A stretch of DNA of 64,000 nt, from assembly GCF_006345805.1 (NCBI RefSeq), contig NC_042997.1, forward strand, positions 130,696,001-130,760,000, written 5' to 3'. Source of the stretch: Octopus sinensis (lineage: Eukaryota). The position numbers were made by a program, and so were the translations under genes. Positions within the stretch are counted from its first letter, which is position 1; each line of letters opens with the position of its first letter. Shown one piece after another: positions 12,254-62,268 of the stretch. The notes under the pieces were generated by a model. That model was not told where the DNA came from. It saw only the letters and a list, made by a program, of their open reading frames with translations, and ran no database searches.

Positions 12254-12340
12254 CTCTTTCTTTAAGGCCTTTGTTAAAGTTGCGTTGTACGAAAAATAGC
12301 TCAATCATTAATAAAGCCCAAACGGACAATGCTATGGTAA
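12254..12340 (-). CDS. Coding exon 9 (TIALSVWALLMIELFFVQRNFNKGLKER)
   Basis: Acceptor atccattttcag, donor GAG|GTAGGT, 87 nt, phase 1 to 1. TM helix followed by NFNKGLKE. Confidence 0.88.
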
Positions 12341-12422
12341 CTGAAAATGGATAATATTTCTTTTATAAAAAAATGAAAACCACATGATAATGCTCAAAGT
12401 AAATATAACATATTCCATAGTG

Positions 12423-12639
12423 CTGTAAATAATAATAATATTATTTTATAAGCTTAAAGCTTATAAGTGATTACCATGCAGTGACTAAAGAAAATAGTCT
12501 AATAATGGGGCATATAAGCCCTTGATGGAAAAAAGTAGGTTATCCTGCATGCCCCATTATTAGATTATTTTCTTTAGTCATAGCATGATGATTGCTTATA
12601 AGCTTTAAGCTTGTAAAATATTATTATTATTATTCACAG
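12423..12639. repeat. Fold-back MITE, ~90-bp arms
   Basis: 12423-12513 vs 12549-12639 inverted. Confidence 0.88.
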
Positions 12640-14253
12640 AATTGTAAAAAATTGATGCTGCTGAACAAAAACCATTACAGAAAATATTCTATAGTAGTTT
12701 ATGACTGAATATTTGATTAAAAGTAACAAATACTGATGATTAAACAGATTCATTCCTATTATATCTGTGTCACATTATTGATGGCTTTTTAATTAGAATT
12801 ATAACAGTTTAATATATTAGTAAACTAACTGAAAAAAGACTGAAAAAATGTCAAACTCGTAAAAAACACCATTTGAGCATGGCTATTGCTAGTACCGCCT
12901 GACTGGCCCTCGTGCCAGTGGAATGTAAAAGCACCCACTACACTCTCAGAGTGGTTGGCGTTAGGAAGGGCATCCAGCTGTAGAAACACTGCCAGATCAG
13001 ATTGGAGCCTGGTGCAACCATCTGGTTCGCCAGTCCTCAGTCAAATCGTCCAACCTATGCTAGCATGGAAAGCGGACGTTAAATGATGATGATGATGATA
13101 GATTGAAAATACAATGATATTATGACCATTCGATTTAAATTTTCACAACTTTATTGATCTCTACTTAGAATCATAGATGTACCTATGGGCTTTATACTGC
13201 AAAAAGATTCTTCTGATCTTAACTAGGAACCAAGCACTGCCATTTGGCTTTCATAAAAATGTTACCTCAGTCTTTAATATTAGTGATTCCCTACTGGGGC
13301 TTCACAAAATCCTCTTTAAGGGTTTTGTAATAAGTATCAATAAGCAAAAATTGTAGTCCCTATACAAACCTTAAAATTCTGCTGATCCATTATAACAACA
13401 ACAAAAATCCTTTCTACTATGGGCACAAGGCCTAAAATTTTGTGGGGAAGGGTTAAGTCGATTACATTAACCACAGTGCTCAACTGGTATTTATTTCATC
13501 AACCCTGAAAGGATGAATGGCAAAGCTGATCTTGGTGGAATTTCAATGTAAAGACAGACGAAATGCCACTAAGCATTTTGCCTGGTGTACTAATGATTCT
13601 GTCACCTTTCCAATGGTTTCAAATTTTGGCACATGGCCAGGAATTTTAGTGGGAGTGAGTTAGGTGATTACATCAACCTCCAGTGCTTAACTTTTACATT
13701 TTATTTTACTGATCCTGAAATGATGAAAGGTAAAGTCTGTCTTGGTGGAATTTGAAGTCAGAACATAAGGAGTCAGAAGAAATGTTGCTAAGCATTTTGT
13801 CCAACATGTTAATGATCTTATCAGCACACCACATCAAATAATAATAATAGTTTAAAATAACAACAACAGCATCAACAACTAATAATAATAATAATAATAG
13901 TAATCCTTTCTACTATAGGCACAAAGCCTGAAATTTGGGGGGAGGGGGCCAGTCGATGAGATACTGAAATCTATTTGAAAATGATACCAGGATTACCATC
14001 CCTACAGGAAGTGCAAAAAATCGTGTTAACTGGAACGACTCATGTACTGAGAAGAGCATTATCAATGTGAAAACAATATTCATTCATGAATTTATTAATT
14101 AATTTTTTTTATATACATATTTTACCTGTGAATTTGCATGTGTAACCTGGGAATGCATACAATGAGCTTCTCTGCCCTAGGTGTACAGAAAACACTCGGC
14201 GAGAAACAAAAGAAAATTTTAAGAAAGAAGAAAAAAAAAATAATAATAATAAT

Positions 14254-14688
14254 CAACCATGCTCTATGATATACCAATACATATGACTAGATATTGTTGT
14301 CAAGGACCACCAAGAAATAGAAAATATCTGCTAATCCAGCAGATGACATTGTATCTCTAAAAGAAATGGAGAAACTGTGGAAATACAAATATTAGGAATA
14401 GAGATAACATGACCGTGGAGCACAAAAGCAAAAATAATCACTTTAATAATAGGTGATTAGGGACTGATCAAAAAACATACAGACAAATACATAGCCCAAA
14501 CACCAGGACTTATATGTAACATGCAGAAAACAGCACTGCTTGATACTGTACACATCTTACATAAACCACTTTTGGTAGAGTAAAAATAACACCACCAAAA
14601 CAAATCATGTGCATATTCAAGGTGCACAGAGCTCTACTCAGTAGTGTAGTGAAAGCTCACAATAAAAATAAGACTACTGAATAATAAT
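14254..14688 (+). mobile_element. R4/Dong-clade non-LTR element 3' end (restriction-like endonuclease domain) in TAA repeats
   Basis: DIVVKD...PADDIVSLKEMEKL.KY...QKTALLDTVHIL, flanked by (TAA)n on both sides. Confidence 0.75.
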
Positions 14689-16563
14689 TCTTTCAAATTT
14701 TGGCACTGAGCCAACAGTGTTTAGAGGAAGAGAGTAAATCTATTACACCAACCACAGGGCTCATTGGTACTTATTTTATCAAACCATGACAGAATTTGAA
14801 CTCAGAATGTGGAGAGGCATAGGAGAGGCTGTGCGGTAAGTAGCTTGCTTATGAACCAAATGGCACCTTGGGCAATTGTCTTCTACTATAGCCTCGGGCC
14901 AACCATGTGAGTGGATTTGGTAGACGGAAACTGAAAGAAGCCCGTCGTATATATGTATATATATATATATGTGTGTGTGAGTGTATATGTTTGTGTATCT
15001 GTATTTGTCCCCCCAACATCACTTGACAACCGATGCTGGTGTGTTTACATCCCTGTAACTCAGCAGTTTGGTGAAAGAGACCGATAGAATAACTACTAGG
15101 CTTACAAAGAATAAGTCCTGGGGTTGATTTGCTCAACTAAAAGCGGGGCTCCAGCATGGCCACAGTCAAACGAGTAAAAGAGTAAAGAGTATGGAAGAAA
15201 TGCCACTTAATATTTTATCCAACACATGATTCTACCAGCTTGCTGCCATAGACTACTGAAATCATATTTTCTAATATAAGCATCAGAGTATATATTTTTA
15301 GCTGGGAGAAAACAGTGAATTAAATCACTACTTAGTACTATACTCTTTTTAAACATATTTTTATTAGTTTGGTTTGGAGAAAGAGGCCCTTAGCCTTTGC
15401 AAGTCATCTAAGACCTTTATTTTATCAACTTCAGAAGAACAGGAAGAGGCCTTTGAACTTAGAACTTTGAATTCAGAATGTAAAGATATCTAATGATCTA
15501 TAAGATATTTTGACCAGTATTTTATCAATTCTGTCACTTAACCAAATAATACTATCAACCCCAACAGATAACAATGTATCTCTAAAAAAAGAAAGGGAAA
15601 ATTATCTAAAAGAACGCAGACATGGCTGTGTGGTAAAAAGTTTGCTTCCTATCCACATGGTTCTGGGTTCAGTCCCACTGCATGGCACACTAAGCAAGTA
15701 GTGTCTTCTACTATAGCCTTGTGAAAAGATTTGGTAGGTGGAAAATAAAAGAAGCCCATTATGTATGTGTGTGTGTGTATGAGTGTATGTATGTCTTTCT
15801 CTTTGGCTCTGTGTTTGTGTCATCCACCACTGCCATTTGACAACTGGTGCTAGTGTGTTTACATATTCATAATTTAGCAGTTCAGCAAAAAGAGACTGAT
15901 AGAATAAATATCAGGCTTTAAAAAATAGGTACTGGGGTCAATTTATTTGACTAAAAGTTCCTCGATGTGGTACCTTAGCATAACTCCAGTCTAATGAGTG
16001 AAATGAGTAAAAGATAAATGATATTATTCTGCCAGTCCACCATCCTATTGCTCCTGTATTTTATTGACCCCAGAAAGACAAACGGCTAAGTTATTGCTGG
16101 TGTGAAGGGAGATGATGGGTACAGTTTTAAGTTTATTTGTTTGTTGTAAAATTTGTAAGGGGATGATTGAAAGGATGAGTAACTATAAAGCTTGTCTGGT
16201 AAATAGCAGGAAAACATGACTGTGAAATAATTTGCCTATGTAATAGAGCTGTGTTAATGTACAGTATAACATAATAGACACCGCTATTTAACAAGTAATA
16301 TTGGTTTCAAATTTTGGAACAAGGCCAGAAATTTCGGGATAGGGAGTACATCAACCCCAGTGCTCAACTGGTACTTATCAATCCCCAGTAGGATGAAAGG
16401 TAAAGTTGACATCAGTAGATTTTGAACTCAGAATGTAAAGGCAGATGAAACGCCACAAAGCCTTTTGCCTGATTCTGCCAGCTCTCTGCTTTAACAAGTG
16501 TAATATTATAATATAAATGAGATATCAGTGTTATATCAGAGGGATATATCTATGTTTATATAC

Positions 16564-16645
16564 CTGAAGTCAGTATACAGTAAATCATAAACTTTTCAGT
16601 AAGTTCATTGGTGTTGGGTTGTAAGTTTGATAAATGGATGTAAAG
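16564..16645 (-). CDS. Coding exon 8 (LYIHLSNLQPNTNELTEKFMIYCILTS-V)
   Basis: Strong acceptor ttttcttctttttcag, donor CAG|GTATAT, 82 nt, phase 0 to 1, exactly bridging exons 7 and 9. Confidence 0.82.
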
Positions 16646-18227
16646 CTGAAAAAGAAGAAAACAAAACATAAACGAAACAAACAAAAGCAAAACAAAACAA
16701 AAGAAGGAGCATTAAGAATTTAAAAAAAAAGCACAAAACTGGTTCTAAATCTTGTTAAATTTCTTCCAGCCATCTCAAATATCCACCTGAATATTTTCAC
16801 AAGATATACTAATTGTTCATGTCATAAGGGATCATAGAATTCATGAGTTCTATCTTAGCTTTTGCATTTCTGCCTGCTTGGCATTTGATAACAAAGAAAA
16901 CTAAACTATTCAAAATTATAAATTCTTCAGAAAATATGAAAACAAAAATCTGAAAATGTTTTCCTTCTATAAAAATGGTTTCAAACATTGACACAAGGTC
17001 AGAAATTTCTCAGAGAGAAAACAGCCAATTGTGTTGGCAGCCCCAGGATTTGAATGGTACATCATTTTACTGCCCCCAGCAGGATTTGAACTCTGAACAT
17101 AAAAGCACATATCTCAATACTGGTAGACATTTTGCCTATCACACAACATATTCTGCTGGTCCACTTCCTGTAATAATTGTTACTATTATAGGTACAAGGC
17201 CAGAAATTTGGGGAAGGCAGTCAATTATATTGACCCCAGTACTTGACTGATACTTTATTTTATTGAACCTGAAAGGATCAAAGCAAAGTTGAACTCAGCA
17301 GGGTTTGAACTCTGAACATAAAGCACTGGAAAAAATATACTGCAGGGTATTTTTTTATGACAACTCTTACATTCCCACCATCTTCCACTACTCAAAGATA
17401 TTATTTCTAACTTTGGTACAAGTCCAGCAATTTTCGAAGTGCAGGGGTCAGTTGATTAAATCAACCCCGGTACTTGACCTTCATTTTATTGTCACTGGAA
17501 GGATGAAAGACAAAGTTGACATTGGCAGGATTTGAAATCAGAATGTTAAAGGCTAGAACAAATACCACAAGGCAATTTTTCTCATACTCTACTGATTCTG
17601 TCAATCTAATGCCCTCACTGCCCTTGAGCAGTCAACACCATTGCCTTTGGTACTTGACTGGTACTTTATTTTATTGACCTCAAAAGGATGAAAAGCAAAG
17701 TTAATTTTAGTGGGATTTGAACTCACTGCCCATATTAACAATGGTTTCAAATTTTGGCACAAGGCCAGCAGTTTTGAGATTGGTGTTCGGCTGATATCAT
17801 CATCCCTAGTACTTGGCTGACACCTCATTTTATAGAGCCCAGAGGGATGAGAGGCAAAGCTGACCCTAGTGGAATTTGAACTCAGAATATGAGTTGCAAG
17901 AAGTACCACCTGTCCAATCCTCTCATACTACTACTACTACAAACTTATCTAAACTTTGACATAATTTCATTATAACTGATCTTGAACACTTAGATATACA
18001 ATTAACCAGCAATGTTTTATGAGCAAGCCATTCCTTATTTTTGAAACCTATATTTGAAACAAAATATATTTTAATTTAGGCGATCCTAATCTGAAATCTA
18101 TCAAAATGTTTCTATTTCCTTAATGAGATTATTTAGCCTGACTATGAACAAACAACTGTTTATATAAATATTATATATTTCTATTTCCCTTTTCTGATGA
18201 TAGTTATGATAACAATATTTCTTTATA

Positions 18228-19461
18228 TCAGGCTGAGTAAAAAGTAAGCACCGTTTTGAAACATGAAATTCATCACAATATATTTCAACAATGCAGAAAT
18301 TTGATTCATCAAAGTAAGAACCATTACAATGAATACATTTTTGCCAATGAGTTACAAGTTTCTTTATTCTGGTAACATAAAAATCTGGAGTTCTGGAGCT
18401 GATGAACTCTTTGAATGCACTTTCAGCATTGGTTTGATTTTTGAACTCCTTCTCTCATAGGAAACCATTGGAGTGCTTTAAAAGGTGGTAGTTGGTAGAA
18501 GAAAGGTCTGGGGAATAAGCTAGGTGGAGAAGAACTTCGTAGCCAAATTCTCTCAACTTCTGGAGCATCATTAGTGAAACTAATGATTGGCCCTCTTCTG
18601 TTGTCCAGTCTGGGGTGGAGGAGTAGCAGTTTTTCATTCATTTTGGTAATTTCATGGCAATATGTTTCTGTAGTAATGGTTTTTCCAGGTTCTAAGAAGT
18701 TATAGTGGATGAGTCCAACAGTACACCACCAAACAGTCACCATAACCTTCTTTTTGAAGAGATCAAATTTAAGGAAGGTTTTCAGTGCTTCATTTTGGTC
18801 CAATCACTGTGAAGAACATTTTTTATTATTGTACAGAATCCACTTTTCATCGCAAGTTACAATACAGTCAGGAAATGGATCAGTCTGGTTATGGAGAAGA
18901 AGCGACGAGCAAATTTCATATCTGCACATTTTCTGATTTTCATTCAAATCGTGTAGTAACCATTTGTTGAGCTTTTTTGATTTTCCAATCACATACAAAC
19001 TTGAAGTTCTTTTGCCAGTTCTTGAGTGATTTTGCATGGATCTTTCTCAATTATGGTCTTTAGTTGACTGTCATTGATGACAGATGGGCGTCCACTATGT
19101 TCACGATCTTCAAGGCTCAGGTTTCCACTGTGAAATCATTTAAACCATTTTCGAGCTGACCACTCACTGGTCATTTCCTGACTAAATGTTTCGTTGATAT
19201 TGTGAGCAGTTTCAGCTGCTTTACATCTTTATTTAAGTTCAATAGCAAAACTGCTTGAATACCATTCTTTGATAGTTCCATTTCAGATGGTTGTAACAAT
19301 GGTGAAAAATGTATCAATGTTAATTTATTGACGAATTTGGGCAGTCTATGTCTATATTATCAGACAATTACAAAACAATGTTTAAAAAATTCAAAACTCT
19401 GCAAAAATCTGGTACAAATTCTTCGTGGTCCAAAATGTTGCTTACTTTTTACTCAACCTGA
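18228..19461 (-). mobile_element. Full-length-size, inactivated mariner (DD34D) transposon
   Basis: ~31-bp TIRs TCAGGCTGAGTAAAAAGTAAGCACCGTTTTG, TA at both ends. IVTCDEKWILYNN, KKVMVTVWW and AYSPDL motifs split across frames. Confidence 0.93.
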
Positions 19462-20404
19462 TAGTTCAATCTATGGTGATATCTGTTGGAGTTTTAACTA
19501 ATTTGTGTCATATCTTTACCAGACCATCATCACGCGCACAATCACACAAAAGAAAGAAGAAAGAAAAAAATTAAATAAATAAAATGAAATAAAGATTGAA
19601 AATCTAAAAAAAATAAATATAAAACTAATCAATAAAACAATATCTAAGGAAAATCACTAAAATGAAATGAATGAATTTATAAGCAATTTAGAATATATCA
19701 CATGCAACAAGCAGATGTAGGTATAGTTGTGAAGTTAAGAAGTTTACATTGCAACCACATGGTTGATCCTACAGTGTGCCATCTGGAGCAAGAACCTTCA
19801 GCTATAACCACAGGTACTTCAATGTTTTGTGTGAGAAATTTGGCAAATAGAAACTGTGAGAATACCCATCATACATGTGTGTTTGTGTGTATACGTGCAA
19901 TCATATGTGTATGTATGTATGAGTATATGAATATGTATGTGTGTGTACATGTATCATCATCAATCAAATGTCCTCTTTCCATGCTGACATGCATTGGACA
20001 AATTGTGACAGTCTGAGCCATTTCTTATTGAGAGCTACTGTTCATTTAGACTGGTTGGTTTTTGTATGTCATTTGACTTGGTTTCTACCACCAGGTGCCC
20101 TTCTGATCACCAACCATTTTACAGAGTATACCGGATGCATTTTCTCATGGCACCACCTTGAAAGAGTTTGCATTCTTGGTGTGAGGAAGGGCATCCAGCC
20201 ATTGAAGCCATGCTAAAGTAAACACTGGAGCTCAACGCAGTTCTCTAGCTCATCAGATCCTGTTGAACTGCTCCAACCATGCCAGCATTGAAGATGGATG
20301 CCAAAAAGTGATAATGATGGCAGGACAAGAGGGACCTCATAAATATATATTCAACACGATACAAGATGTGTGTGTATATATATATTAAACATGATACAAG
20401 ATAT

Positions 20405-20467
<63 letters not shown>

Positions 20468-21130
20468 TATAATACAGGATGGAGGGGTCTTTTTAGTCTT
20501 GTCAAAGCTGGTGGCATATCAAAACACACTCAGTTCATGGTGTAGAGTGATTATTGATAGAAAGTATATCTGTAAAAGTAAGAGGATGAGTGCCTCATAT
20601 TGTAAGGGCATATGGCTCATTAGAAGAAAATTGTAAGAGGCCAAGTGCTTCATTTCAAGGACATGGTGTCATCTGAGGTAAGAGGCTTAGTGCCTCATTG
20701 TAAGGACCTTGAGTCCAAAAGAAATATTGCCTCAAATTGTAAGTTCACAAAAGAACAATGTTTTAGAGAAGCAAAGATGTCTTCTCTCATTAATACCATC
20801 CTGTTCATCATTCATCTCATCTCATTAATGTCTTTGTCCAGCCCGTAGCTTCTCCATCTGTGTATGGCTTTCATGGCCAATTTAATGGAATAAAAAAGTA
20901 GCCAACCTGTGTGATCATGTAAAAAAAAAGAATGTGTGATGATGATGATAATGATAGTGGTGGTGGTGTTGGTGGTGGTGATAGTGATAGTGGGGTGGAA
21001 AAGGAGAAAAGAGATGATGATGATGATGATACTGATGATAATGCCATGACAACTTCATCAGCAGCAGACTGCTCCAGACAGACTTCATCTCAAAGCAGGC
21101 CTCAATATAAAAAAAAAGGGATTCACTTAC

Positions 21131-21217
21131 AGTTATTGTTTTAAATAAGTAATATCCAGGCTTTAAGAATCCAACTAGAATGAATACCAAAACACCAATC
21201 TTGCTTTCCTTCTTCAT
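21131..21217 (-). CDS. Coding exon 7 (MKKESKIGVLVFILVGFLKPGYYLFKTIT)
   Basis: Acceptor cttttcatttattctgcag, donor ACT|GTAAGT, 87 nt, phase 0 to 0. Confidence 0.9.
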
Positions 21218-22169
21218 CTGCAGAATAAATGAAAAGTGTGTGTATAGTCAATTGTAAGTAGTAAGTTGTCCTATATAGTCAGATGTACATAGTCCTATGT
21301 GATCAGTTGCATAAACTTAGAAGGTCATATAAGACTGAAGCCTGTCCACATTAGTCATTATACCTACCAAAAGTCCAGGCTAACACCTACCCCACTACCA
21401 CAACATGCTTCCATTTAATATTAATCAATTTGAAAGGCGGCGAGCTGGCAGAAATGTTAGCATGCTGGGTGAAATGCTTAGCGGTATTTTGTCTGTCTTT
21501 ACATTCTGAGTTCAAATTCTGCCGAGGTCAACTTTGTCTTTCATCCTTTTGGGGTCGATTAAATAAGTACCAGTTACGCACTGTGGTTGATATAATCGAC
21601 TTAATCCATTTGTCTGTCCTTGTTTGTCCCTTCTATGTTTAGCACCTTGTGGGTAGTAAAGAAATAGAAATAGGTATTTTGTCTGTCTTTACGTTCTGAG
21701 TTCAAATTCCGCCGAGGTCGACTTTGCCTTTCGTCCTATTGGGGTTGATAAATTAAGTACCAGTTACACACTGGGGTCGATCTAATCGATTGACCCCTTC
21801 CCACAAAATATTGGGTCTTGTGCCCAGAGTAGAAAAGAATAATAATCAATTTGAATTTTGTCTTCCTTAACAAGTCGTGTCGTTGATGCTAATGATTTCT
21901 CTTCTTATTTTGCTGGAGCTAAATTTGTCAGAAAAATTCCATTTTAACTCATTGCATTATGTTAGCCCATATATAACTGTGTGTGTGTGTGTATGTATGT
22001 GTGAGTGAATATATGTGTGTGTGTTTATATGTGAGTGTGTGTGTTTGTGTGCATGTGTGAGTATATATGAAGAAAACAATCCATTTTGAAGAGAATGGTG
22101 ACAGGGAATGGAAAATGGATTGTCTGCAATAATGTGAAGTGCAAATAATCATGGAGGAAGCATGGTGAA

Positions 22170-22746: not shown

Positions 22747-22770
22747 CGTGTGCATGCATGCATGTAAATA

Positions 22771-24285
22771 CATGGGCTGGAAAGTTCATAGGCTAACTAC
22801 GAAGGAGTGACGCTAAAGTAGTGAAATCATGCATGCACTAATTTCAGCTCTTCTTATTAATAACTGTATTGTTTCTTTCCAGGTAAACTGGTATCTAATT
22901 GTTCAAAGAAAACTTCAAAAGTACCTAGTAGCGACTTCTCTTGAAAATCAACAAAATTTGGCATCACAGTACCTGCAGAAAAAGGGTATAGCCCCCATGA
23001 ACATTCATGGTATATTAGGGGCTGATGCTCTAGCTTTATCTACAATGTAAAAAGTGGGCAGCGGAATTTAGGAGAAGGGAGTCTTGAAGATGACCCAGGG
23101 TCTGGATGTCCTGCAATTGTCACCACCAAGGAAAACATCAATCCTGTGCACCACATGGTCATGGATGACAGGTGATTGACTATAAATCAAATAGTCAATA
23201 CTATTAGCATACCCTGTGAGAGAGTTGAAAATGTTTTGTACAATGAAGATTTCTGCTTGGTGGATGTCACATCTTCTGACACCTGATCAAAAACACACCA
23301 GGTTGATCACATCACGGGAAAATCTGACATTATTTGAGACCAATCTAGTTGGTTTCTTTGAATGTTTACCAAGCCAGGATGAGTGTTGGCTTCATTACTT
23401 TGAGCCAGAGACAAAGAGACAATCCATGCAGAGGAAACACCCCTCCTTACCTGCTCCAAAGAAAGGTCAAGGTTGTTTCATCTGTAGGGTAGATGATGGT
23501 CTCAGTTTTTTTGAGATGCAAAAGGCACTGTGTTTATTGATCATCTTCAAAAGGGCCACACCATCAATGGAGAGTACTATGCCAAATTGCTGAGGTAGTT
23601 AAAAAAAGGTTATCAAGACCAAACGGCCAGGAGAGCTGATGAAATATCTTGTTGCATCAGGACAAAGCTCCAACACACAAGTCCTTGGTTGCAATGGCTG
23701 CTGTGCATTACTAACCCTAACCCTAGCTTTGAACTGGTTGATCACCCACCCTATTCTCCTGATTTGGTCCCATCTCACTATCATCTGTTCCCCAACATCA
23801 AAAAACACTTGGCTGGGAACCAGTATTGTAGTGATGATGACATTATATCTGGTGTTATATCTGCGGCGAGCTGGCAGAGACACTAGCACGTCGTGCGAAG
23901 TGCTTCACGGTATTTCGCCCGTCGCTACGTTCCGAGTTCAAATTCCGCTGAGGTCGACTTTGCCTTTCATCCTTTCGGGGTCGATAAATTAAGTACCAGT
24001 TAATCACTGGGGTTGATGTAATTGACTTAATCCGTTTGTCTGTCCTTGTTTGTCCCCTCTATGTTTAGCCCCTTGTGGGCAATAAAGAAACAATTATATC
24101 TGCTGTTGATGGACATATTTTGACCACCAGGATGGAAGCTTCTTCACCAATGGGATCCAAGCGCTACAATAACTGATGAAAAATGTGTGTAGACTGCAAG
24201 AGGGAGTATGTTGAAAATAAACTTCATTTGGTCACATTCCATGGGAGTATCTCAGTCAGCCTATGAACTTTTCAGATGATCCTCA
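22771..24285 (+). mobile_element. Mariner transposon of a second family, interrupted by a SINE
   Basis: Imperfect TIRs CATGGGCTGGAAAGTTCATAGGCT / AGCCTATGAACTTTTCAGATGATCCTCA, TA flanks. QDECWLHYFEPETKRQSMQ and HPPYSPDLVPSHYHLFP motifs. Confidence 0.9.
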
Positions 24286-24644
24286 TAAAGCATCAAAGTC
24301 ACATTGATATGCAATAGACAGCTGATTAGAGATGTTCCCTCATTGTACTAAATATATTTTTGGCTCCACATAATAATAATCCTGTTGAAGATGTTTTACT
24401 TACCTAGAATATTACATGTTCTTAGAGTACTTTAGTCCTTGTTATAGGTGTTAGATGTAATTTCTTGCATAGAAGTAATAATAATTTTTAACAAAGTTAA
24501 AAAGCTGTTATAGGGCTGATATGAAGTATATTCTCTACTATTTACCTTGCTAGATATGAAGAATTCATACATCCCAATGGAAATGCAATGATTATTTACA
24601 AACTTCAAAATTTGTCTGAATTGAATGAAAGTTAAAGAACTTAC

Positions 24645-24779
24645 CAACACGTAGCCAAGAAAATCCCACGCTAAGGATATTGGAATGCCAATAAACAGAA
24701 CAACAAGCTCCATAGTGTTTAGGGTAAGGTTGGCAAAGTTATTAAACCGCAGACTAAGAGTAAGAATCACAACGCTGAC
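24645..24779 (-). CDS. Coding exon 6 (VSVVILTLSLRF...AWDFLGYVL)
   Basis: Acceptor atattttctag, donor TTG|GTAAGT, 135 nt, phase 0 to 0. Confidence 0.9.
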
Positions 24780-26380: not shown

Positions 26381-26444
<64 letters not shown>

Positions 26445-27330: not shown

Positions 27331-27432
27331 ATATGTAATTTTTTAAAACTATTAATTAAAGCTGAACATATAGAAAAACTTTGATTCAAGCTAGTATTGA
27401 TTCTTTTATCCACAAAGATCTAAAATTAATGT

Positions 27433-28212: not shown

Positions 28213-28271
28213 AGTGACTTGGAGATCAAATTTTAATAATGTTGAAAACAGTGTTGCCTGTTTGTACATGT
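28213..28271 (-). CDS. Coding exon 5 (N-MYKQATLFSTLLKFDLQVT)
   Basis: Acceptor tttttctttttctttattcag, donor ACT|GTAAGT, 59 nt, phase 1 to 0. Confidence 0.9.
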
Positions 28272-31403: not shown

Positions 31404-31746
31404 TATACACATACATATATATCTATATGTCAAGCTTCTTTCAGTTTCCATCTACCAAATCTATCAATTAAGAAAAATGTACCAAGCTTTAAAAATGGGT
31501 ACTCAGATTGATTTGTTTGACTAGGCTCTTCAATGCAGTTCCCCAGCATGGCCACAAACCAATGACTGAAATAAATATAAAATAAATAAATAAATGAAAA
31601 GGAACAAAATCTTATTTAAAAGAATGATATTTTGTCTTGAACTGCTACTTCTATCATCAAATATTTCAGAGTGGTGCTCCAGTATGACCACAGCCACATA
31701 GCTGAAACAAATAAAAGAATACCAACAAAACTCTTATTATACTTAC

Positions 31747-31864
31747 TCTGAAGAGCTTCAGAAGCCCCGACTATCTTGAATTCAAGCCAGCCAAACCTTC
31801 GTACAACAAGTGTAGCCAAGCAGATATTTAATGGAACAAGTATGGAGGCTATAATGAGCCGAAC
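31747..31864 (-). CDS. Coding exon 4 (VRLIIASILVPLNICLATLVVRRFGWLEFKIVGASEALQ)
   Basis: Acceptor (TTA)n-TTCAG, donor AGA|GTAAGT, 118 nt, phase 0 to 1. Confidence 0.9.
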
Positions 31865-31883
31865 CTGAATAATAATAATAATG

Positions 31884-31922
<39 letters not shown>

Positions 31923-31971
31923 GTGATAATATTAATAATAATAGTGATAATAATAATATTAATAACAACTC

Positions 31972-32260
31972 GAGGTAACTCGAATGTGGAATCTAAAAAC
32001 AGAAACAATTCCTATCATAGTAGACGCATTAGGTATGATGAAAAAAAATATTCAGACAAATACATGACAAAAACACCAGGACTTACAAATATATATAACA
32101 TACAGAAAATTGCACTACTGGGCACTGCACACATCCTACGCAAAATACTTTCAATACAGTAACCATAAGAGCATCACCACAAACCACAGCACATATCCAA
32201 GGCACACAGAGCTGTGCTTCATTGTGAAGTGAAAGCACGCTATAAAAATAAAACTACTAA
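31972..32260 (+). mobile_element. R4/Dong-clade element 3' end, second copy, in a (TAA)n array abutting the exon 4 acceptor
   Basis: EVTRMWNLKTETIPIIVDALG...IQKIALLGTAHILRKILSIQ*; (TAA)n at 31868-31965 and 32261-32283. Confidence 0.8.
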
Positions 32261-34610: not shown

Positions 34611-34753
34611 CAATTTAACTGTTTCTAAATTCTTCGTTATGCTGGCTTGCACAATACAGTAGATCAGAATAACAACCATTGCAGCAACCAAAGCTAGCAG
34701 TTCATAGGCTCGTTCTCTAAGGAGACCGTGAATGGTATAAAACACACAGAATC
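34611..34753 (-). CDS. Coding exon 3 (GFCVFYTIHGLLRERAYELL...KNLETVKL)
   Basis: Acceptor cctttctttcag, donor TTG|GTAAGT, 143 nt, phase 1 to 0, continues exon 2 without a stop. Confidence 0.92.
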
Positions 34754-38140: not shown

Positions 38141-38735
38141 GTATGTGTATATATATATATATAATGAAAATAAGCAACAAGGATATTCAGAGGTAATGGA
38201 TATCCTTGTTGCTCATTTTGATTTTAATCACCTTATTTTGAAATTGCAGGAGTGGCTGTGTGGAGGCGCAGGAGTGGCTGTGTGGTAAGTAGCTTGCTAA
38301 CCAACCACATGGTTCCGGGTTCAGTTCCACTGCGTGGCATCTTGGGCAAGTGTCTTCTGCTATAGCCCCGGGCCGACCAATGCCTTGTGAGTGGATTTGG
38401 TAGACGGAAACTGAAAGAAGCCTGTCGCATATATGTATATATGTATGTGTGTGTGTGTGTGTGTGTGTTTGTGTGTCTGTGTTTGTCCCCCTAACATTGC
38501 TTGACAGCCAATGCTGGTGTGTTTACATCCCTGTCACTTAGCGGTTCGGCAAAAGAGACCGATAGAATAAGTACTGGGTTTACAAAGAATAAGTCCCGGG
38601 GTCAATTTGCTTGACTAAAGGCGGTGCTCCAGCATGGCCACAGTCAAATGACTGAAACAAGTAAAAGAGAGTAATACCATACTAAATTCTGGTGCCTCAA
38701 CCTAAGTACCATATTCATCTGAATCTCTCTCTGTA

Positions 38736-43279: not shown

Positions 43280-43445
43280 CTGCATTTATGAGAATAAGAA
43301 TCGTGAAGATAATATCAGCATAGTGCAATTCAGTAACTGCTTTGACGAGTTGATAGATAGTCAAACAGATTGCAATGATAATGTTTATAAGAGACATTGA
43401 TAAGAAGAGCCATTCTATTGATGTCAATCCAGAAAAGGTTCGAAA
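43280..43445 (-). CDS. Coding exon 2 (FRTFSGLTSIEWLFLS...ILILINA-G), TM1 and start of TM2
   Basis: Acceptor ctttcttctttcag, donor CAG|GTAAGA, 166 nt, phase 0 to 1, hydrophobic open frame. Confidence 0.9.
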
Positions 43446-49998: not shown

Positions 49999-50216
49999 AA
50001 ACCACAATCTCAAAATCGTTAGTGCAACACACCTAACTGCTAGGCTACACTCCTTCACATATATATATAAACATACACACACACACATAGTTGAGTAGGA
50101 AAATAAACAATAGTATCATTCAATACACTTAGTTAAAGCTGTATGTTTTTAATAACAGGCTGACTCAGCTCCATGTTATTTAGTTTTCTAGATGCAGAAT
50201 ACATCCAAATCCTCAG

Positions 50217-52710: not shown

Positions 52711-52745
<35 letters not shown>

Positions 52746-53237: not shown

Positions 53238-53268
<31 letters not shown>

Positions 53269-55102
53269 TATTATCAATAATATTAATATAGTTAGTTTTG
53301 TTTGTTTTTGTACGTACCTGTGGTGGGTGTCACACTTCAAAGGAAGAGGTAAAAAGGTTGAAGGGACAGGTACAAAGAGAGGTACAAAGAGAAAGAGGTA
53401 CAAAGTGAGAGAGATGGGGACAGAGAGGGAGTGAGAGAGAGAGAATGAGCGGTGATTGAAAGGAAGAGGAAAAATGTATATCAGTATTTTCAGAGTAGAC
53501 TGATACATACATCAAAAGAAAAGTAGATAAATAGACACATTGGTAAATTAAAGACTAATAACAACAGCAAATATTGGATGTCGCTTTCACTTTTCATTAC
53601 CATGCTAGGATAAAATTGACGTGAAAGTGGCTGAGTACTCCATAGACATGCATACCATCAACTTAGTTCTGAGAGAGATTCAGTCTCACACAGAATGTGA
53701 CAAGGCTGGCCCCTTTGAATTACAGCTACTACTCATTTTGGCCATCAGAGTGGACTAGAGCAAGATAAACCTTCAAGTGGTTGGAAGAAAATGAAAAAAG
53801 ATCCAGTACAGGGGCATGAAAATCTTTTTAGTCGTTAGGGTCACTATGGGTGTTAATCCGGTCTTAACAGTGGCCTATCTATCTGTCTGTCTGTTTTGTC
53901 TGTCTGACAGTTATTCTGTCTGTCTACCTCTCTCTCTCTGTCACCCTCTGTCTATCTGTCTCTCAGCAAATACCTGTGGATGTTACTGTTACTTTTATAT
54001 ACTTGAAGGGAGAGATAAAAATAAAAATAAGCAGAGAAGGTTTACTTGAAGTGAGCGGTAAAGCGAGAGAGAGAGAGGAGGGACAGAGAGTGAGTAAGAT
54101 AGATAGTGAGTGGTGACTGAAAGGAAGGTGACGTTTGTTTTGTGTTTTTAAATGTTTATCAGTATTATCAGAGCAGACAGATACATAACCACAACAAATA
54201 CTGGATGTTACTTTTAATTTCCTACAATGTAATTAACTACCATATTCTTCTATATACTGGGTCTTCAGCCAATATTGGACATTACTAAGGTGGTGAGCTG
54301 GCAGAAACATTAGCATGCTGGGCGAAATGCTTAACTGTATTTCATCTGTCTTTATGTACTGAGTTCAAATTCCGCCGAGGTTGACTTTGCCTTTCATCCT
54401 TTCGAGGTCGATCAATTAAGTACCAGTTACGCACAGGGGTTGATCTAATTGACTTAATCCATTTGTCTGTCCTTGTTTGTCCCCTCTATGTTTAACCCCT
54501 TGTTGGCAATAAGGAAATAAGAAACATTAGCATGTTGGGTGAAATGCTTAGCAGGTATTTCACCTGTCTTTACGTTCTGAGTTCAAATTCCACCGAGGTC
54601 GACTTTGCCTTTCATCCTTTCAGGGTTGATAAATTAAGAACTAGTGGTATACTGGGATCAATCTAATTGACTGCCCCCATCCCCCAAAATTTTAGGCCTT
54701 GTGGCTAGAATAGAAAAGACTACTGGATATTACTGTCGGAAAGATTTCTCATGGCACCAGCATACAATTTACAAATGCTTACATTTTTTATGCTTTCCAT
54801 GAAGTTTCCACAGGTCCAGCTAGTTATTATTATTATTATTATTACTATTCTTCTTCTTATTATTATGAAGTTGGTGCTCTGGCAGAATGGTTAGAATGCC
54901 AGCCAAAATGCTTAGTGGAATTTTGTCCACCTTTATGTTCTGAGCTCAAATTCAAGGTCAACTTTGCCTTTCATTCTTTCAAAGTCAACAAAATAAGTAC
55001 CAGTTAATTACTGAGGCCAATGTAATTGACTAACTCAGCTCCCCTAAAAAATTTCAGGCCTAGTTCCTATAATGGAAAGGACTACTACTACTACTACTAC
55101 TA

Positions 55103-55133
<31 letters not shown>

Positions 55134-55424
55134 GACCCCCAGTTTTCAACTGGTACTTAATTTATCGACCCTGAAATGATGAAAGGCAATGTCAACTTTG
55201 ATGGAATTAGAACTCAGAACATGAAGAGAGATGAAATACTGCTAAAAATTTCGCCTGGTGTGCTAATGATTCTGCCAGCTTGCTGCCTTTAATGGTTTCA
55301 AATTTTGGCACAAGGCAAGCATTTTGGGGTAGGGGGTAAGTCGGTTATGACCCCAGAGGTCAACTGGTACTTATTTCATGAACCCAAAAGGATGAAAGGC
55401 AAAACTGACTCAGGCATAATGTAA

Positions 55425-55740
55425 TGTATTGTAGTGAAAATGGTATTCCCCTTCTCATATGACAAAGTGGTATGACAGCCACTATAAAGTCAGACAGTCA
55501 GTCACTGTAGAAGTCAGTAGTAGTAGAGTCATTGTACAAGTTCTCATTTGGAGTCAGTGTCAGTTACGTGATATATACGAGTTTGAGTTACCATCAAGGT
55601 AGATGTTTCAAAGTCATTGTCTTGCAGAGCTATCAGCAATAGCACGATAGATGAGTCAAAGATTATAAGATGTGGAATACCGCCACAACATAATAGTGGC
55701 AACAAGAATATTATAATGCTGACAACAACATACAAGTGTG
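55425..55740 (+). mobile_element. Partial solo LTR of the same gypsy family
   Basis: Reverse-complement match to most of the 49663-49998 LTR; interrupts a SINE. Confidence 0.85.
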
Positions 55741-57377
55741 GGGTGTGGGGGTGCACAGGCGTGCGTGTTTGTGTCACCTTGTCTTGGATGTCATGCCATT
55801 GTTGTAACTGTGTTACAAGTGGTGTCATTCATTTTCAGTCATCCTTGAAAACATGTCTGGCTATGGGGAAATATTATCTTACTTGGAAACAGGTGAAGAT
55901 TGATGACAGGAAGGGCATCCAGCCTCAACAAACTCTACCATACCCATGCAAGCATATAACAGAGGATGATGAAACTACAGTGATGATGATGATGCAGATG
56001 ATAATGACATGTGTTACAACAATGTAGAAAATGGATGCAAAATAAGGCATGGATAAGAAGTGAACTATGATGGACACCTACCTATACACTAAATACCTCA
56101 CTTAACTTATCAACTCTCATCTCGTTAACATATTTGTGCATGGCTTGAAAGTATGTGGCTTAGTGGGCAGGGTATTTGGCTCCAGATTGTAAAGTTGTGA
56201 GATCAATTCCTGGTGGCATGTTGTGTCCTTGAACAAGACCTTTTATTTCATGTTGCTCTAGTCCACTCAACTGGTAAAAGTGAGTTGTACTTGTATTTTA
56301 AAGGGCCAGCCTTGTCGCATTTTGTATCATAGTGAATCTCCTTGAGAGCTATGTTAATTTCATGAGCAGGCTCTTTCATTGATCAGATCCCTTGTTGTTG
56401 TAAAAAGCCGGCACTCCAACATCTAAAATGGAGTGCCAGCTTTTTTTTTTTCTTTGGTCTCATTTACACCAACCAGTTTGACAGCTCTGATCAAACCATT
56501 TAACTCATGCCAAAATGGAAACAGATGTTAAAGGACGATGATGATTTACTTAGTACAGCCAGTTTGCTAAGTATGATATCCTGTTAAAGACTTTTTCAAG
56601 GTCAGAGAATGCAAAGCATAGTGGTTTGCTCATAATTAAAAACTTCTATTATTGTCTCACTAGGAAGAGGCATCAGTGCTACTCTATCTTTGCACAAATC
56701 TAAATTGCATCCCGTCTAAGTTAATTATCTTTCTAATCAACTGTGCTATACCTCTTTAGTTATAAATTTTGCAGTTGATTTTTCTAGAACATCTCACCCT
56801 TGCAGCAGTTGCTGATGGTACTACTCAGCCAGTCATTGAGAATAACCCACCCCTGTCCTACCGCACTGCCAGATCTACCATGTGACTACCATGTGTCTTA
56901 CTTAACTGTTTCCCTGTTGTCATAACCTTAATAGTTATTTTGACCATATAGTTTGCTTGAGGTAGTCCCTCTCTCCCATACATTGTCTTTATGTGGCAAA
57001 GCCTCCCCATGCTTCTTTCTCCTTACTGAGGGCAAGTACCACAGTTATTCTCATATATAAGGTCATACTGGCCTGGCGCTCTACTTTGCAATCCAGAACA
57101 GTCATAACACAAGTTCTCAGGTCACAGAATATTGTAACTTTTTGTTTCCACTCCTTTCTAAGTAAATTTGATAACTAGCTTCTCTTCCAGCTACCAGATA
57201 CTGTTTCTACTGTTTCTTACTTCAGCTTTGTTTTGCTTTTATGACTACCCACTATATTGTCACTACTACCATGTTATTTTCTCTCTAGCACAGTGATTCT
57301 CAACTAGAGTCTAAATGACTTTTGCGTGTCCACATATGATTTCGTTAAAATTTATGAGCAATAAATGCATGTAAGCT

Positions 57378-57772
57378 CAGGAGTGGCTGTGTGGTAAGTA
57401 GCTTGCTTACCAACCACATGGTTCCGGGTTCAGTCCCACTGTGTGGCACCTTGGGCAAGTGTTTCTACTTTAGCCTCAGGCTGACCAAAGCCTTGTGAGT
57501 GGATTTGGTAGACGGAAACTGAAAGAAACCCGTCGTATATATTTATATGTATGTGTGTGTGTGTGTGTGCGTTTGTGTTTGTCCCTTCCCAACATCGCTT
57601 GACAACCGATGCTGGTGTGTTACGTCCCCGTAACTTAGCGGTTCGGCAAAAGAGACCGATAGAATAAGTACTAGGCTTACAAAGGATAAGTCCTGGGATC
57701 GATTAGCTCGACTAAAGGCGGTGCTCCAGCATGGCCACAGCCAAGTGACTGAAACAAGTAAAAGAGTAAGAG
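57378..57772 (+). mobile_element. SINE family A, representative young copy (tRNA head, internal AT/GT microsatellite)
   Basis: Head AGGAGTGGCTGTGTGGTAAG...GGTTCAGTCCC, core CACCTTGGGCAAGTG, tail CAAGTAAAAGAGT. Other copies at ~250-930, 2160-2385, 3633-4050, 7606-7989(-), 14822-15192, 15620-16015, 26210-26660, 34140-34275(-), 38245-38671, 38965-39330(-). Confidence 0.92.
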
Positions 57773-57857
57773 CAATAAATTGCGTATAATTCTACCATAC
57801 ACAAAATACTTTACTTTTTTTATACAATTCCAAATAATACTTAATTATAAGAGTGTG

Positions 57858-58178
57858 AGGGCGCGTGGCTTAGTGGTTAGGGCATTCGGCTCATGATCGT
57901 AAGGTTGTGAGTTCGATTCCCGGCGACGCGTTGTGTCCTTGAGCAAGACACTTTATTTCACGTTGCTCCAGTCCACTCAGCTGGCAAAAATGAGTTGTAC
58001 TTGTATTTCAAAGGGTCAGCCTTGTCACTCTCTGTGTCACGCTGATTATCCCCGAGAACTACGTTAAGGGTACACGTGTCTGTGGAATGCTCAGCCATTT
58101 GCACATTAATTTCACGAGCAAGCTGTTCCGTTGATCGTATCAGCTGGGACCCTCGTCGTCGTAACCGGCAGAGTCTTT
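57858..58178 (+). mobile_element. SINE family E (tRNA head + GTGTCCTTGAGCAAGACACTT core)
   Basis: A box TGGCTTAGTGG, B box AGTTCGATTCC. Older copy at ~56155-56400 and a 3' piece at ~60867-61040. Confidence 0.85.
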
Positions 58179-58313
58179 GAAAAAAAAAAAAATTATAAGA
58201 GTATAAGATTTATTTTTAAACACTGTATGGCTATGAGGGTCTATCCGAGTGAAATAAAAATCAAAAAGGTCCATTTGTCTAGTTTGACCTTGCTACATCC
58301 ACATACCTTGCTA

Positions 58314-58730
58314 AGGCAGCGAGCTGGCAGACACATTAGCATGCTGGGCGAAATGCTTAGTGTATTTTGTCTGCCACTACGTTCTGAGTTCAAATTCCGC
58401 TGAGGTTGACTTTGTCTTTCATCCTTTTGGGGTCGATTAAATAAGTACCAGTTACGCACTAGGGTCGATATAATTGACTTAATCCATTTGTCTGTCCTTG
58501 TTTGTCCTCTCTGTGTTTAGCCCCTTGTGGGTAGTAAAGAAATAGGTATTTCGTCTGCCGCTACGTTCTGAGTTCAAATTCTGCCGAGGCCGACTTTGTC
58601 TTTCATCCTTTTGGGGGCGATTAAATAAGTACCAGTTACGCACTGGGGTCAATATAATTGACTTAATCCATTTGTCTGTCCTTTTTTGTCCTCTCTGTGT
58701 TTAGCCCCTTGTGGGTAGTAAAGAAATAGA
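58314..58730 (+). mobile_element. SINE family B, partial tandem dimer (most abundant family in the window)
   Basis: GGCGAGCTGGCAGA head, GAGTTCAAATTCC B-box, central GCCTTTCATCCTTTCGGGGTCGATAAATTAAGTACC. Other copies include 9465-9683(-), 21435-21840, 23863-24090, 34305-34530(-), 42290-42525, 44297-44527(-), 46925-47155(-), 52750-52980(-), 54290-54725. Confidence 0.92.
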
Positions 58731-59234
58731 TATCTTGCTAATGGCTTGCTGCATACTGTTTCATAGAAACTCCTACTTGTCTTCTATGTCAGGTTTTTAT
58801 CTTCTCAATATATGTGAAACCCAGTACTTCTGTGAACCTACATCTGACTAAGGCAACTTTCAGCTGCCATATTAGTCTTATGTCTCCGGATCATCTAGTT
58901 CTAACTTGAAAGCCACTAATCACTAATCTATGATGTGTGCTATATTCTTCACCAGGGAAGACTTAGTATTGACATCTATCAGACTATTCCACTTCCTGAA
59001 AAGCATCAACTTTATTTGGCTTGTGTGCTTAACAGTGTGGTGGGCTTTAAGGTGTCTACCTCTTTACTAAAGTTAATGTTGAAAACAATAAAACTATTAG
59101 ATCATTTGCATCACACAACTCCAGAAGCCTTAATCCCTCTTCATTCTGTGTACAATAATCACAGCATCAGTGTACAATGGAATTGCTATCACGGTGTCAA
59201 ACCATCTAAACCATACCACCATAGAAAATGAACA

Positions 59235-60160
59235 TGTAGCAGACTCTTAGTGAAACATCCTCTCTATCTGACATATATAACACAAATACAGACGTAGCAG
59301 ATAACAGCTAGCCTTCAGCCGCTTAGGCCCAGTTATGTCCACTACTCTGATTGGTTGGTATTGGTGCATTTTGTCTCTTGCTTTATTTCGCGCCAATGTG
59401 CGACCCAACCAATTGTAACCTTCTGATAAGGTCCCATGACACTGTTTTTCTAAAGCTCTGTTTGAGCCTACAATTTGTTATAAAACCCAGCGATTCATCG
59501 AATCGCATGTCTTTGGTTCTCCAACCACTAACCACAGAGCACTTAAGCAGTTCCCGCGATGCAGCCATGTTCCAGCGACACCAACACTAGCAGCATTTCA
59601 GGACCTTCTCCACCGTCGCCTTCATCTTGACGTTGTCTCCCCCACCGTCGCCTTCATCTTAACAGCGCCACAGCAATTTCATTTAGGTTTAACTTCACGC
59701 TGTTTGTGAATATTCATCATGGTTAACAGCAAGTCTACCTGTGAGAACCTTCTGTACCAAGTAACCCGGCACAGCATAGAAGCCAAAACCTCTACACATG
59801 TAGTAACCGGTTCTGCCTTGTGACCTCAACCTCTTGTACAGAATTCCAACTATTGCGTTCATTACTACGAACTGGTATTTACCTTCATCTTGTATCTGAT
59901 CTTCTTCTAGCGTCCTGATAGACTCATTTCTATGCTCTGTATTTTATCACACACACATACACATTATTGTATGCTTGAAGGCCTGTCTATTGTCTATTAT
60001 TATTGTTCTTATTATATATGTACTTATGACACAGACACACACTCTGCTACTCACATGTTAACATCTAAATAAAACCTTTCTCTTAACATATTACGATTGT
60101 GTCGTCTTCTCTCTTTTCCTTTTTGGCACTCTTATTCATTTATCCATATTTTGGCTTTTA
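59235..60160 (+). mobile_element. Possible solo LTR of an unrelated family
   Basis: Starts with TGT, CpG-richer, internal 19-bp direct repeat CCACCGTCGCCTTCATCTT, AATAAA near the 3' end. 3' CA end and TSD not identified. Confidence 0.3.
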
Positions 60161-60229
60161 TTGTAAGGCGACCGTGCGGTGTTTAAAGGAGTCGTTCGTT
60201 CGTCACCATCTCCTTTCGCACGGTCGTTC

Positions 60230-60378
60230 TACAAACATAAAAGCATGACGACAATGAAAAGGATGATATGACTGCTTCAATAAGTGTGTGGATTTGAGTG
60301 GGGAATATGTTGAATAATATCACAATTAATGATCCTCCTGTATTTTCTTTTACCCAAAGCCGGAAACTTTTCACCACC
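60230..60378 (+). mobile_element. Short mariner 3'-end relic
   Basis: KCVDLSGEYVE* followed by AAGCCGGAAACTTTTCA, resembling a TIR. Confidence 0.55.
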
Positions 60379-62169
60379 ACCCCAACCCTCATAGATATAG
60401 GCATACGCACACAAGTTTGTTCCCTTCCATCTTTGTCACCTCATAACTTTCAGGAAGATGGAGATTTCTTGATGAAATTTTCTACAAATACCTATCAGAT
60501 GGTGTAGATTACGAATATATCAGAATTTAATGTGGAAAAAAATTTTTTTAAAGTGGCGTGAACACATACGAAGTGACATACATTACATATACAAAGTGAA
60601 ACCTAAAATTCTGAAAAAAAAAAAATTTTTGATGTGAGTCTATGGATTATGTGACTTGGCCACCACTTTTACACATCAAATTCCAACATAATCATAATTT
60701 TCATTATCTTAAACGTATTTGTTGAAAATTTTCCGTAAAAAATCGTTTTTCTGGAAGTTATACGGAAACAGATTTGGTAAGTGCGCATTTGTGTAGGTAT
60801 GCCTGCCTGCCTACCTACATACCTCCATCCATCCAGCCATCCATCTATTCAGCTAACAAAAATGAGTAGTACCTGTATTTCAAAGGGCCAACCTTATCAT
60901 CTTCTGTGTCACGCTGAATCTCCCTGAGAACTGAGTTAAGGGTACACGTGTCTGTGGAGTGCTCACGTTAATTTCACGAGCAGGCTGTTCCGTTGATCGG
61001 ATCAACTGGAACCCTTGTCGTCGTAACTGACGGAGTACCAGTTTACATGTATATATATATAGGGAGAGTTTTCTAACAGAGGCATGATGAGCATCGTCAA
61101 TTAGATTAACCTGTATTCTCAAATGATATTTGTTTCAGCAACCCTGAGGGAAGAGGGAAAAAGTTTACTTCGCCAAGATTTAAACTCGGAACGTAATTGT
61201 ACTCAACGAAATACCACAAGAAACTTTGCTACTTTATGAAACTCCTTTAACGAACTCACTCGACAGATACCCAACTCCGAACCAATATTTTACTGTGAAG
61301 TGTAAAGTTATAGAATCGAAAGATGGCCCTGATGACCAGGTTACTTCGATTGCTTGTTGAACCCTTTCTTTCAAAGTGATACCTTTAAGAAAGGCAGAAA
61401 CGTCATATAATTTCCTTTCCTTTTCTACTCCGAATCCTGACTTGTTTGCCTATATTCGTAATCAATCGGTTTTACTGTAAGTAGTTTTACTTTCCTCGTG
61501 GCAGACAACGAGACGGACAAGTGTGTTCTGTTAACGAGGTTTTAAAATACCAATCAATGAATCGTCGTGACAACAGCAATCCTTCTAAAATAAACAGAGT
61601 TATTTTTTCAGGTTGACGAGAGGAATCTTAATAACATATTTGAAATAGCTAAGAGCAGCATTTAAAGTGCAGACGATTAAAGTTAGATGTTTAATTGTTA
61701 AAAGTGGGCGGGGTAAGAAAATGGAATGTAAATGCAACACGATTAACTAATTCAGTTATAAGCTCTATTTACAAGTCTATATTTAGTTTATCTCATTTTG
61801 AACCTGTGATTATTCTCCTTGGAACAAATTTACCGATCAGGAGAAGAATCCCGACGGTAAAGGGTTTGTTCCAGCCCATGCGTAAGTGTAGTGATTGACT
61901 TTTGATGTACCGAATATGAATCAGGAAGTAAACTTTTGATACCAGATCAAATAAACTTAGTTGTGTTACAAATAGTTAATATGAAATTGATACATTAACT
62001 TAATTAGCAAACGTTATTAAAATACCTCTTATGCAATTAAGCATTGAATACTATTTGATATGCAACTGTTTACAAAAAAAGTTATTCCTTCTAAGAAGTT
62101 TCACCCTAGTTGACATTGGCTATCATTTTACGGTGAAATGAATGAATAACATGATTTAACAATACATAC

Positions 62170-62268
62170 CCGTCCCCATATTCGAACTGTTGATTTAGCA
62201 GTTATAGGTCCGATGTTGTAACGTGTAGGTTCCGTGGACAGGGTGATTTCGTTGTCTTCAGCAGCCAT
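62170..62268 (-). CDS. Coding exon 1 of an uncharacterised multi-pass membrane protein gene (MAAEDNEITLSTEPTRYNIGPITAKSTVRIWGR)
   Basis: ATG at 62268 with an in-frame TAG ending 7 nt upstream. 99 nt open, ends CGG|GTATGT (phase 0), and joins in frame to exon 2 (GR|FRTF). Confidence 0.8.

Follow-up and report, generated by a model that had tools for sequence, protein, structure and literature searches.

Same-orientation tandem duplication of a small helical unit is generally known from membrane proteins such as SWEET (3+1+3 helices) and TM6SF, in which two EXPERA domains of four transmembrane helices (TM) follow one another. The closest described family for the protein considered here, Pfam DUF7789 (PF25044), has neither a known function nor a solved structure. 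The present work concerns a stretch of 64,000 nucleotides (nt) of Octopus sinensis (contig NC_042997.1, positions 130,696,001 to 130,760,000, hereafter "the window", to which all coordinates refer) and the gene found there on the minus strand, which consists of the first nine of the ten coding exons of LOC115210864. The 325-amino-acid (aa) product of these nine exons has DUF7789 as its sole Pfam match (105.4 bits, E = 2.7e-30, for a gathering cut-off of 25 bits), and it does not differ from a typical member of that family. Profile comparison further showed that the predicted protein is built from the four-helix DUF7789 unit, present twice in tandem. Indeed, when each half was scanned alone, residues 32-157 matched positions 2-128 of the model (55.4 bits, E = 7.8e-15) and residues 168-304 matched positions 1-126 (61.9 bits, E = 7.9e-17), the model being 129 positions long. 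A single model thus fits each half over nearly its full length, in support of a 4+4 duplication. Such a duplication recalls SWEET and TM6SF. However, the helix count of SWEET differs, and no sequence match was consistent, MtN3_slv matching a single one of the 149 aligned relatives of the octopus protein (E = 0.007). EXPERA was not among the 25 Pfam families listed for these relatives, and comparison of the structure model with the PDB by Foldseek gave no significant match, the EBP/sigma-2 fold included.

Gene model and public annotation

The gene was rebuilt from splice sites and reading frames, and then corrected by means of orthologues. It comprises nine exons running from 62268 down to 12254, with canonical AG/GT at all internal borders and compatible phases, and they join into 976 nt, i.e. 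325 stop-free codons plus one nucleotide. A preliminary description, drawn from the letters of the window, had proposed nine phase-matched exons, a 325-codon stop-free frame and these very limits, all of which were reproduced. The start codon, an ATG at 62268, lies in a Kozak-like context (cacaaATGG), and a TAG stands in frame 9 nt 5' of it. Residues are numbered below on the window protein, and P0003 designates isoform X4 of LOC115210864.

Exon 1, 62170..62268, minus strand: 99 nt, residues 1-33, donor gtatgt, 100% identity to residues 1-33 of P0003; predicted cytosolic N-terminal segment with a predicted beta-hairpin
Exon 2, 43280..43445, minus strand: 166 nt, residues 34-88, TM1 and most of TM2, including N87
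Exon 3, 34611..34753, minus strand: 143 nt, residues 89-136, end of TM2, HGLLRERAYE turn (E102, E106), TM3
Exon 4, 31747..31864, minus strand: 118 nt, residues 137-175, TM4 (P147), RRFGWLEFKIVGA linker, end of repeat 1
Exon 5, 28213..28271, minus strand: 59 nt, residues 176-195, start of repeat 2 and first part of TM5, K189-F190-D191-L192-Q193
Exon 6, 24645..24779, minus strand: 135 nt, in-frame cassette, residues 196-240, rest of TM5, TM6
Exon 7, 21131..21217, minus strand: 87 nt, residues 241-269, MKKESK turn (E244), TM7 with K259-P260
Exon 8, 16564..16645, minus strand: 82 nt, residues 270-296, TM7-TM8 loop, start of TM8
Exon 9, 12254..12340, minus strand: 87 nt, residues 297-325, TM8, NFNKGLKER tail

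The eight exons that the chain shares with isoform X4 were all placed in the window by tblastn, exons 1 and 9 with 100% identity. For the other six, the alignments overran a few residues into the introns, the translations being identical to P0003 inside the exons. Exon 2, which was the top-scoring acceptor/donor pair within the 27-kb span between exons 1 and 3, reads as P0003 in this way, and exon 8, the best splice-site candidate of its interval, encodes the peptide LYIHLSNLQPNTNELTEKFMIYCILTS, identical in P0003. Exon 6 is skipped in the RefSeq isoforms X4 of O. sinensis and X3 of O. bimaculoides; it is absent from P0003 and P0004 and matches isoform X2 of O. bimaculoides (P0001). Isoform X4 therefore differs from the nine-exon chain in that it lacks exon 6, which the chain contains, whereas the chain lacks the terminal exon. 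Skipping of exon 6 deletes residues 196-240, from the end of TM5 through the whole of TM6, so that the second DUF7789 repeat would be disrupted; it may reflect either real alternative splicing or a modelling artefact. The peptides quoted in the preliminary description were all recovered, on the minus strand, and one of them, YVLMKKESKIGVLVF, crosses the junction between exons 6 and 7. The final V of a peptide quoted in the preliminary description could not be retained, as it is not contiguously encoded at that place, where reading through the donor gives G.

An eight-exon draft of 304 aa, with the acceptor of the last exon at 12359, was dropped when orthologues showed exon 8 (16645-16564) and an acceptor at 12340. 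This draft, which lacked exon 8, had matched O. bimaculoides with E = 1e-164, with 87% identity to isoform X2, and other molluscs with 43-54% identity. An 87-aa query made from two exons found no homologue, the word index being too insensitive for such a short query. Among open reading frames (ORFs) of at least 110 aa in the window, only exon 4 (ORF 31616-32008) and exon 6 (ORF 24432-24770) are represented, in line with the fragmentary ORF track that had been reported for this gene. An (ATT)n microsatellite (31865-31920, minus strand) abuts the acceptor of exon 4, where it replaces the normal polypyrimidine tract, and the ORF track renders it as a stretch of isoleucines.

At its 3' end the frame is incomplete, a point missed in the preliminary description. 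The last full codon of exon 9 is followed by a single base of the next one and then by a good donor (gtaggt). The tenth, terminal exon of the orthologues, of about 25 codons, reads VLGVMPTERTGLLSAHSYQAVRLYQ followed by the stop codon in P0003, and no match to it was found on either strand of the window by a fuzzy six-frame search with both known C-terminal exons. Since exon 9 stops in mid-codon at a donor and the window contains no terminal exon, the coding sequence continues past the left edge, which makes the gene longer than 62 kb. That the last intron of the octopus gene should exceed 12.2 kb is not surprising, as the gene of Argonauta hians is more compact (21.5 kb) and its last intron already reaches 9.3 kb. 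The intron positions of the Argonauta gene are the same wherever tblastn placed an exon (six out of ten).

Splicing into mRNA is supported indirectly, by another cephalopod. The coding sequence of its orthologue P0005 (54% identity) lies uninterrupted, over 1026 nt, on contigs of 1.3-1.4 kb from three sequencing runs, which are most simply explained as transcript assemblies of a spliced mRNA. The gene itself is not new, being already a public RefSeq model with several isoforms. LOC106878077 of O. bimaculoides is its orthologue, and both are described in RefSeq as "uncharacterized protein" with isoforms X1-X4. The epithet "hidden" in the preliminary description was accordingly misplaced, all the more as the family is catalogued as PF25044, while "uncharacterised" was justified: the protein bears no descriptive name, and no paper on it was found. 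As a sequence feature, this locus is thus ordinary, namely a correctly predicted and already annotated gene of a catalogued family, and the window adds nothing to the public annotation.

The DUF7789 family, its repeat and its topology

All 149 aligned relatives matched DUF7789 in a Pfam scan. None of them pointed to a second consistent family, as no family other than DUF7789 matched more than four. A profile search against 1.84 billion representative proteins returned 1401 clusters at E <= 1e-3, of which 153 at E <= 1e-30. Thirty relatives were looked up by name, about a third of which had no source name; those with one were all "uncharacterized", "hypothetical", "unnamed" or "DUF7789 domain-containing". 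Animal members came from molluscs, a brachiopod, a crinoid, an ostracod, Artemia, a tick, a mite, a horseshoe crab, the rotifer Seison and turtles. Homologues were also present in unicellular relatives of animals (the choanoflagellate Choanoeca, Amoebidium and Pigoraptor) and in more distant eukaryotes (the amoebozoans Balamuthia and Clastostelium, and Mantamonas). Half-length matches, i.e. proteins with a single repeat, look like fragments or partial gene models. The turtle member represents a cluster of 33 sequences (P0115, P0176-P0189), which are always named "uncharacterized protein LOC...". This naming suggests that a named human or model-organism orthologue does not exist, and the family may have been lost in mammals.

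The presence of eight transmembrane helices, as proposed in the preliminary description, was borne out by both hydropathy and structure prediction. The 325-aa product displays eight hydrophobic segments, and AlphaFold2, run on the 149-sequence alignment, predicted eight long helices and a short N-terminal beta-hairpin, with a mean predicted local distance difference test (pLDDT) of 88.6 and a predicted template modelling score (pTM) of 0.86. An earlier model built from 17 sequences (pLDDT 72.7) was superseded by this one. In the numbering of P0001, which exceeds that of the window protein by one, the helices occupy residues 43-73, 76-101, 105-128, 134-159, 173-208, 218-244, 247-277 and 285-317; the helix 247-277 breaks after residue 257, beside the conserved P261. 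Lysine plus arginine residues averaged 12.5 per sequence (n = 149) in the N-terminus, loops 2-3, 4-5 and 6-7 and the C-terminal tail, versus 4.5 in the other four loops. According to the positive-inside rule, this asymmetry places both termini in the cytosol, and the two repeats are therefore predicted to be parallel and not inverted.

Direct comparison of the two halves is in line with the duplication, with a more modest signal. Alignment of half 1 on half 2 by hhalign, using 148 sequences, gave E = 1.1e-4 over 71 columns, pairing TM3-TM4 with TM7-TM8, E103 with E245, and the FG of RRFGW with the FG or FN of NFGKG. This register agrees, within about one residue, with the pairs of peptides that had been proposed to echo each other, and it joins the Pfam matches in sustaining the 4+4 duplication claimed at the outset. 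Restricted to 17 sequences from molluscs and brachiopods, the same comparison did not reach significance (E = 0.064). A hidden Markov model (HMM) of one half recovered 36 of the opposite halves at E < 0.01, versus 8-17 for reversed controls and none for shuffled ones. The signal between halves is thus real, but modest and partly driven by composition.

Conserved polar residues do lie within or beside the helices, in agreement with the view put forward early on. The main ones, in P0001 numbering, are the following.

E103: 95%, TM2-TM3 turn
E107: 84%, TM2-TM3 turn
R139: 89%, start of TM4
P148: 71%, middle of TM4
G170: 90%, linker between the repeats
D192: 91%, inside TM5
Q194: 79%, inside TM5
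E245: 91%, TM6-TM7 turn
P261: 76%, TM7
FG.GL: 74-91%, after TM8, including G322 (91%)

The family-conserved E103, D192, E245 and G322 are all present in the octopus protein, as E102, D191, E244 and G321.

A further feature of the family lies in the C-terminal tail. A [DE]xxxL[LIVM] motif was found in 33 of 120 C-terminal tails, as compared with 3.5 +/- 1.8 (maximum 9) in shuffled tails. It reads ERTGLL after TM8 in octopus and Argonauta, and ExxxLL motifs occur in many other members, including those of Pigoraptor and the horseshoe crab. Motifs of the type [DE]xxxL[LI] bind adaptor protein (AP) complexes and route proteins between the trans-Golgi network, endosomes and lysosomes. Their presence in these tails fits with a cytosolic C-terminus and an endomembrane location, and suggests that clathrin adaptors sort the protein to the trans-Golgi or the endolysosomal system. 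In isoform X2 of O. bimaculoides, an alternative last exon lacks the motif.

Possible function and alternative explanations

Taken as a whole, the best explanation of these data, to which we give slightly better than an even chance, is that LOC115210864 encodes a double-DUF7789, eight-helix protein which may work as a transporter or channel, this last part being the least certain. The two four-helix bundles would probably pack about a pseudo-twofold axis perpendicular to the membrane. Between them, a polar pathway may be lined by the conserved intramembrane residues N87, P147, D191/Q193 and P260, and bordered on the cytosolic side by the paired, near-invariant glutamates of the TM2-TM3 (E102) and TM6-TM7 (E244) turns. 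The result would be a transporter or channel for a small solute or an ion. The ERTGLL signal contributed by the tenth exon might engage clathrin adaptors, which would direct the protein to the trans-Golgi and endolysosomal system. On its own, this mechanism, with its Golgi or endolysosomal setting, is reasonable but tentative, and we place it well below an even chance. It is likewise doubtful that DUF7789 as a whole constitutes an unrecognised class of Golgi or endolysosomal transporters or channels, with a fold unlike solved structures, built by parallel duplication of a four-helix unit, inherited from an ancestor common to animals, their unicellular relatives, Amoebozoa and Mantamonas, and apparently missing from mammals.

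Several observations weigh against such a function or temper it. The arguments for the mechanism come solely from the architecture and from which residues are conserved, and no transporter, channel or enzyme family was matched by sequence in Pfam or in a PDB sequence search, where nothing was better than E = 0.22. No well-characterised family was matched, and structure comparison agreed with this. Foldseek, which is not very sensitive for all-helical membrane proteins, gave a best E of 0.14 for the pLDDT 88.6 model against the PDB, with full-length TM-scores of at most 0.28, and a best, non-significant E of 0.06 against viral models, the AlphaFold Database being outside the comparison. The absence of a known fold relative is therefore provisional. 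Outside the Pfam model, the similarity between the halves is weak, and reversed-sequence controls also match to some extent. The middle of TM8 is usually basic (R in 60% of members) but holds W in octopus, so that a pairing of D191 with R is not universal. The dileucine motif is encoded outside the window, in exon 10 (as seen in P0002, P0003 and others), and many members do not have it. Finally, no paper was found that mentions DUF7789, LOC115210864 or LOC106878077, and function has been studied experimentally for no member of the family.

One alternative, put forward in the preliminary description, concerns ancestry and is compatible with any mechanism. The octopus protein could correspond, in animals, to the UPF0658 Golgi apparatus membrane proteins of fungi, of the Schizosaccharomyces pombe C1952.10c type, which we regard as possible, though somewhat less than evenly so. 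These fungal proteins are possibly alike in size and in their multi-pass, Golgi-type membrane character, and the KFD and NFxKGLK motifs, on which the preliminary description drew, may be shared with them. Fungal members would be plausible in an ancient family that includes Amoebozoa and close relatives of both fungi and animals, and residence in the Golgi or endosomes would be in keeping with the ExxxLL motif. On the other hand, among those of the 30 relatives looked up that carried a source name, none was fungal or named UPF0658, and a profile search with distant members yielded only five matches, no fungal one among them. RefSeq, for its part, calls the animal proteins merely "uncharacterized". 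A link between PF25044, PTHR34391 and the names of the S. pombe genes was found in no paper, and UPF0658 appeared in two papers, as a listed name only.

A membrane-embedded enzyme, for example one modifying lipids or sterols, in which the acidic residues E102, E106, D191 and E244 would be catalytic and would not line a path, seems to us rather unlikely. It could draw on the near-invariant carboxylates, which a conserved Tyr and a conserved Asn accompany within the membrane or next to it, and on the 4+4 architecture itself, for which EXPERA-domain sterol isomerases, TM6SF and the eight-helix YhhN/TMEM86 lysoplasmalogenases, likewise built from four-helix membrane units, offer a comparison. However, neither the octopus protein nor its 149 relatives matched an enzyme family of Pfam, the confident model had no significant Foldseek match to any solved structure, membrane enzymes included, and the two best-conserved glutamates are predicted at cytosolic helix turns rather than in a buried pocket.

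Still less probable, in our opinion, is a non-catalytic role in endomembranes, as an organiser, a cargo receptor or a regulatory subunit, exerted in a tetraspan-like manner through protein-protein contacts. Each half is indeed a plain four-helix bundle, and only small, generic four-helix-bundle proteins aligned well with part of the model (target-normalised TM-score of 0.56-0.72 over about 125 residues). The C-terminal adaptor-binding motif, which suggests cycling between compartments, and the conserved amphipathic NFGKGLK tail would also suit such a role. Yet an Asp and a Gln in the middle of TM5, conserved at 79-91% over several eukaryotic supergroups, would be unusual for a purely structural tetraspan, and no partner is known. 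As for a chance chain of exons or a dead pseudogene, in whose favour little speaks, it is already refuted by the conservation data, i.e. the match to a RefSeq protein model, the identity of 43-54% with other molluscs along the full sequence, the spread of the 1401 clusters across eukaryotes, a frame free of stops and frameshifts, and the intronless, mRNA-like contigs of the orthologue.

DUF7789 thus appears as a widespread and strongly conserved orphan family, with no structural relative detectable in the PDB, which deserves functional study. The presumed lack of a named human or model-organism orthologue, and the apparent absence of the family from mammals, would explain why it has been neglected. 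Finding a substrate or a partner would give a function to an orphan family and possibly define a new class of membrane-protein fold, which is modestly interesting.

Sequence context of the gene

The window has a G+C content of 36%, with CpG depleted to 0.37 of expectation, and gave no match in Rfam and tRNA scans. It is DNA of an animal, and its best protein matches point to Octopus. It is rich in microsatellites and in dispersed repeats of 230-430 bp, which occur in both orientations, are 75-90% identical and account for 143 self-alignments of at least 120 bp. These repeats are probably SINE-like (short interspersed nuclear element) and account for much of the length of the gene, which in Argonauta extends over only 21.5 kb. 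Examples of copies are:

7602-7989: dispersed repeat copy
21434-21838: dispersed repeat copy
38266-38676: dispersed repeat copy
54287-54719: dispersed repeat copy
57375-57768: dispersed repeat copy
58313-58658: dispersed repeat copy

Two introns contain sequences reminiscent of transposons. A remnant of a mariner-type transposase lies in intron 7 (18423-18803, minus strand; Pfam Transposase_1, E = 8.7e-18), and an ORF of intron 6 (23216-23593, plus strand) has the look of a transposase N-terminus but no Pfam match. The window reaches just 1.7 kb 5' of the ATG. In the Argonauta hians locus (L001 1-944), the upstream neighbour is a Peptidase_M20 gene on the opposite strand. About 300-430 bp 5' of the octopus ATG, at 62580-62700 (minus-strand reading), a CG- and TG-rich simple repeat (gcgtg/gtgtg) stands out in this CpG-poor window and could be promoter-proximal sequence.

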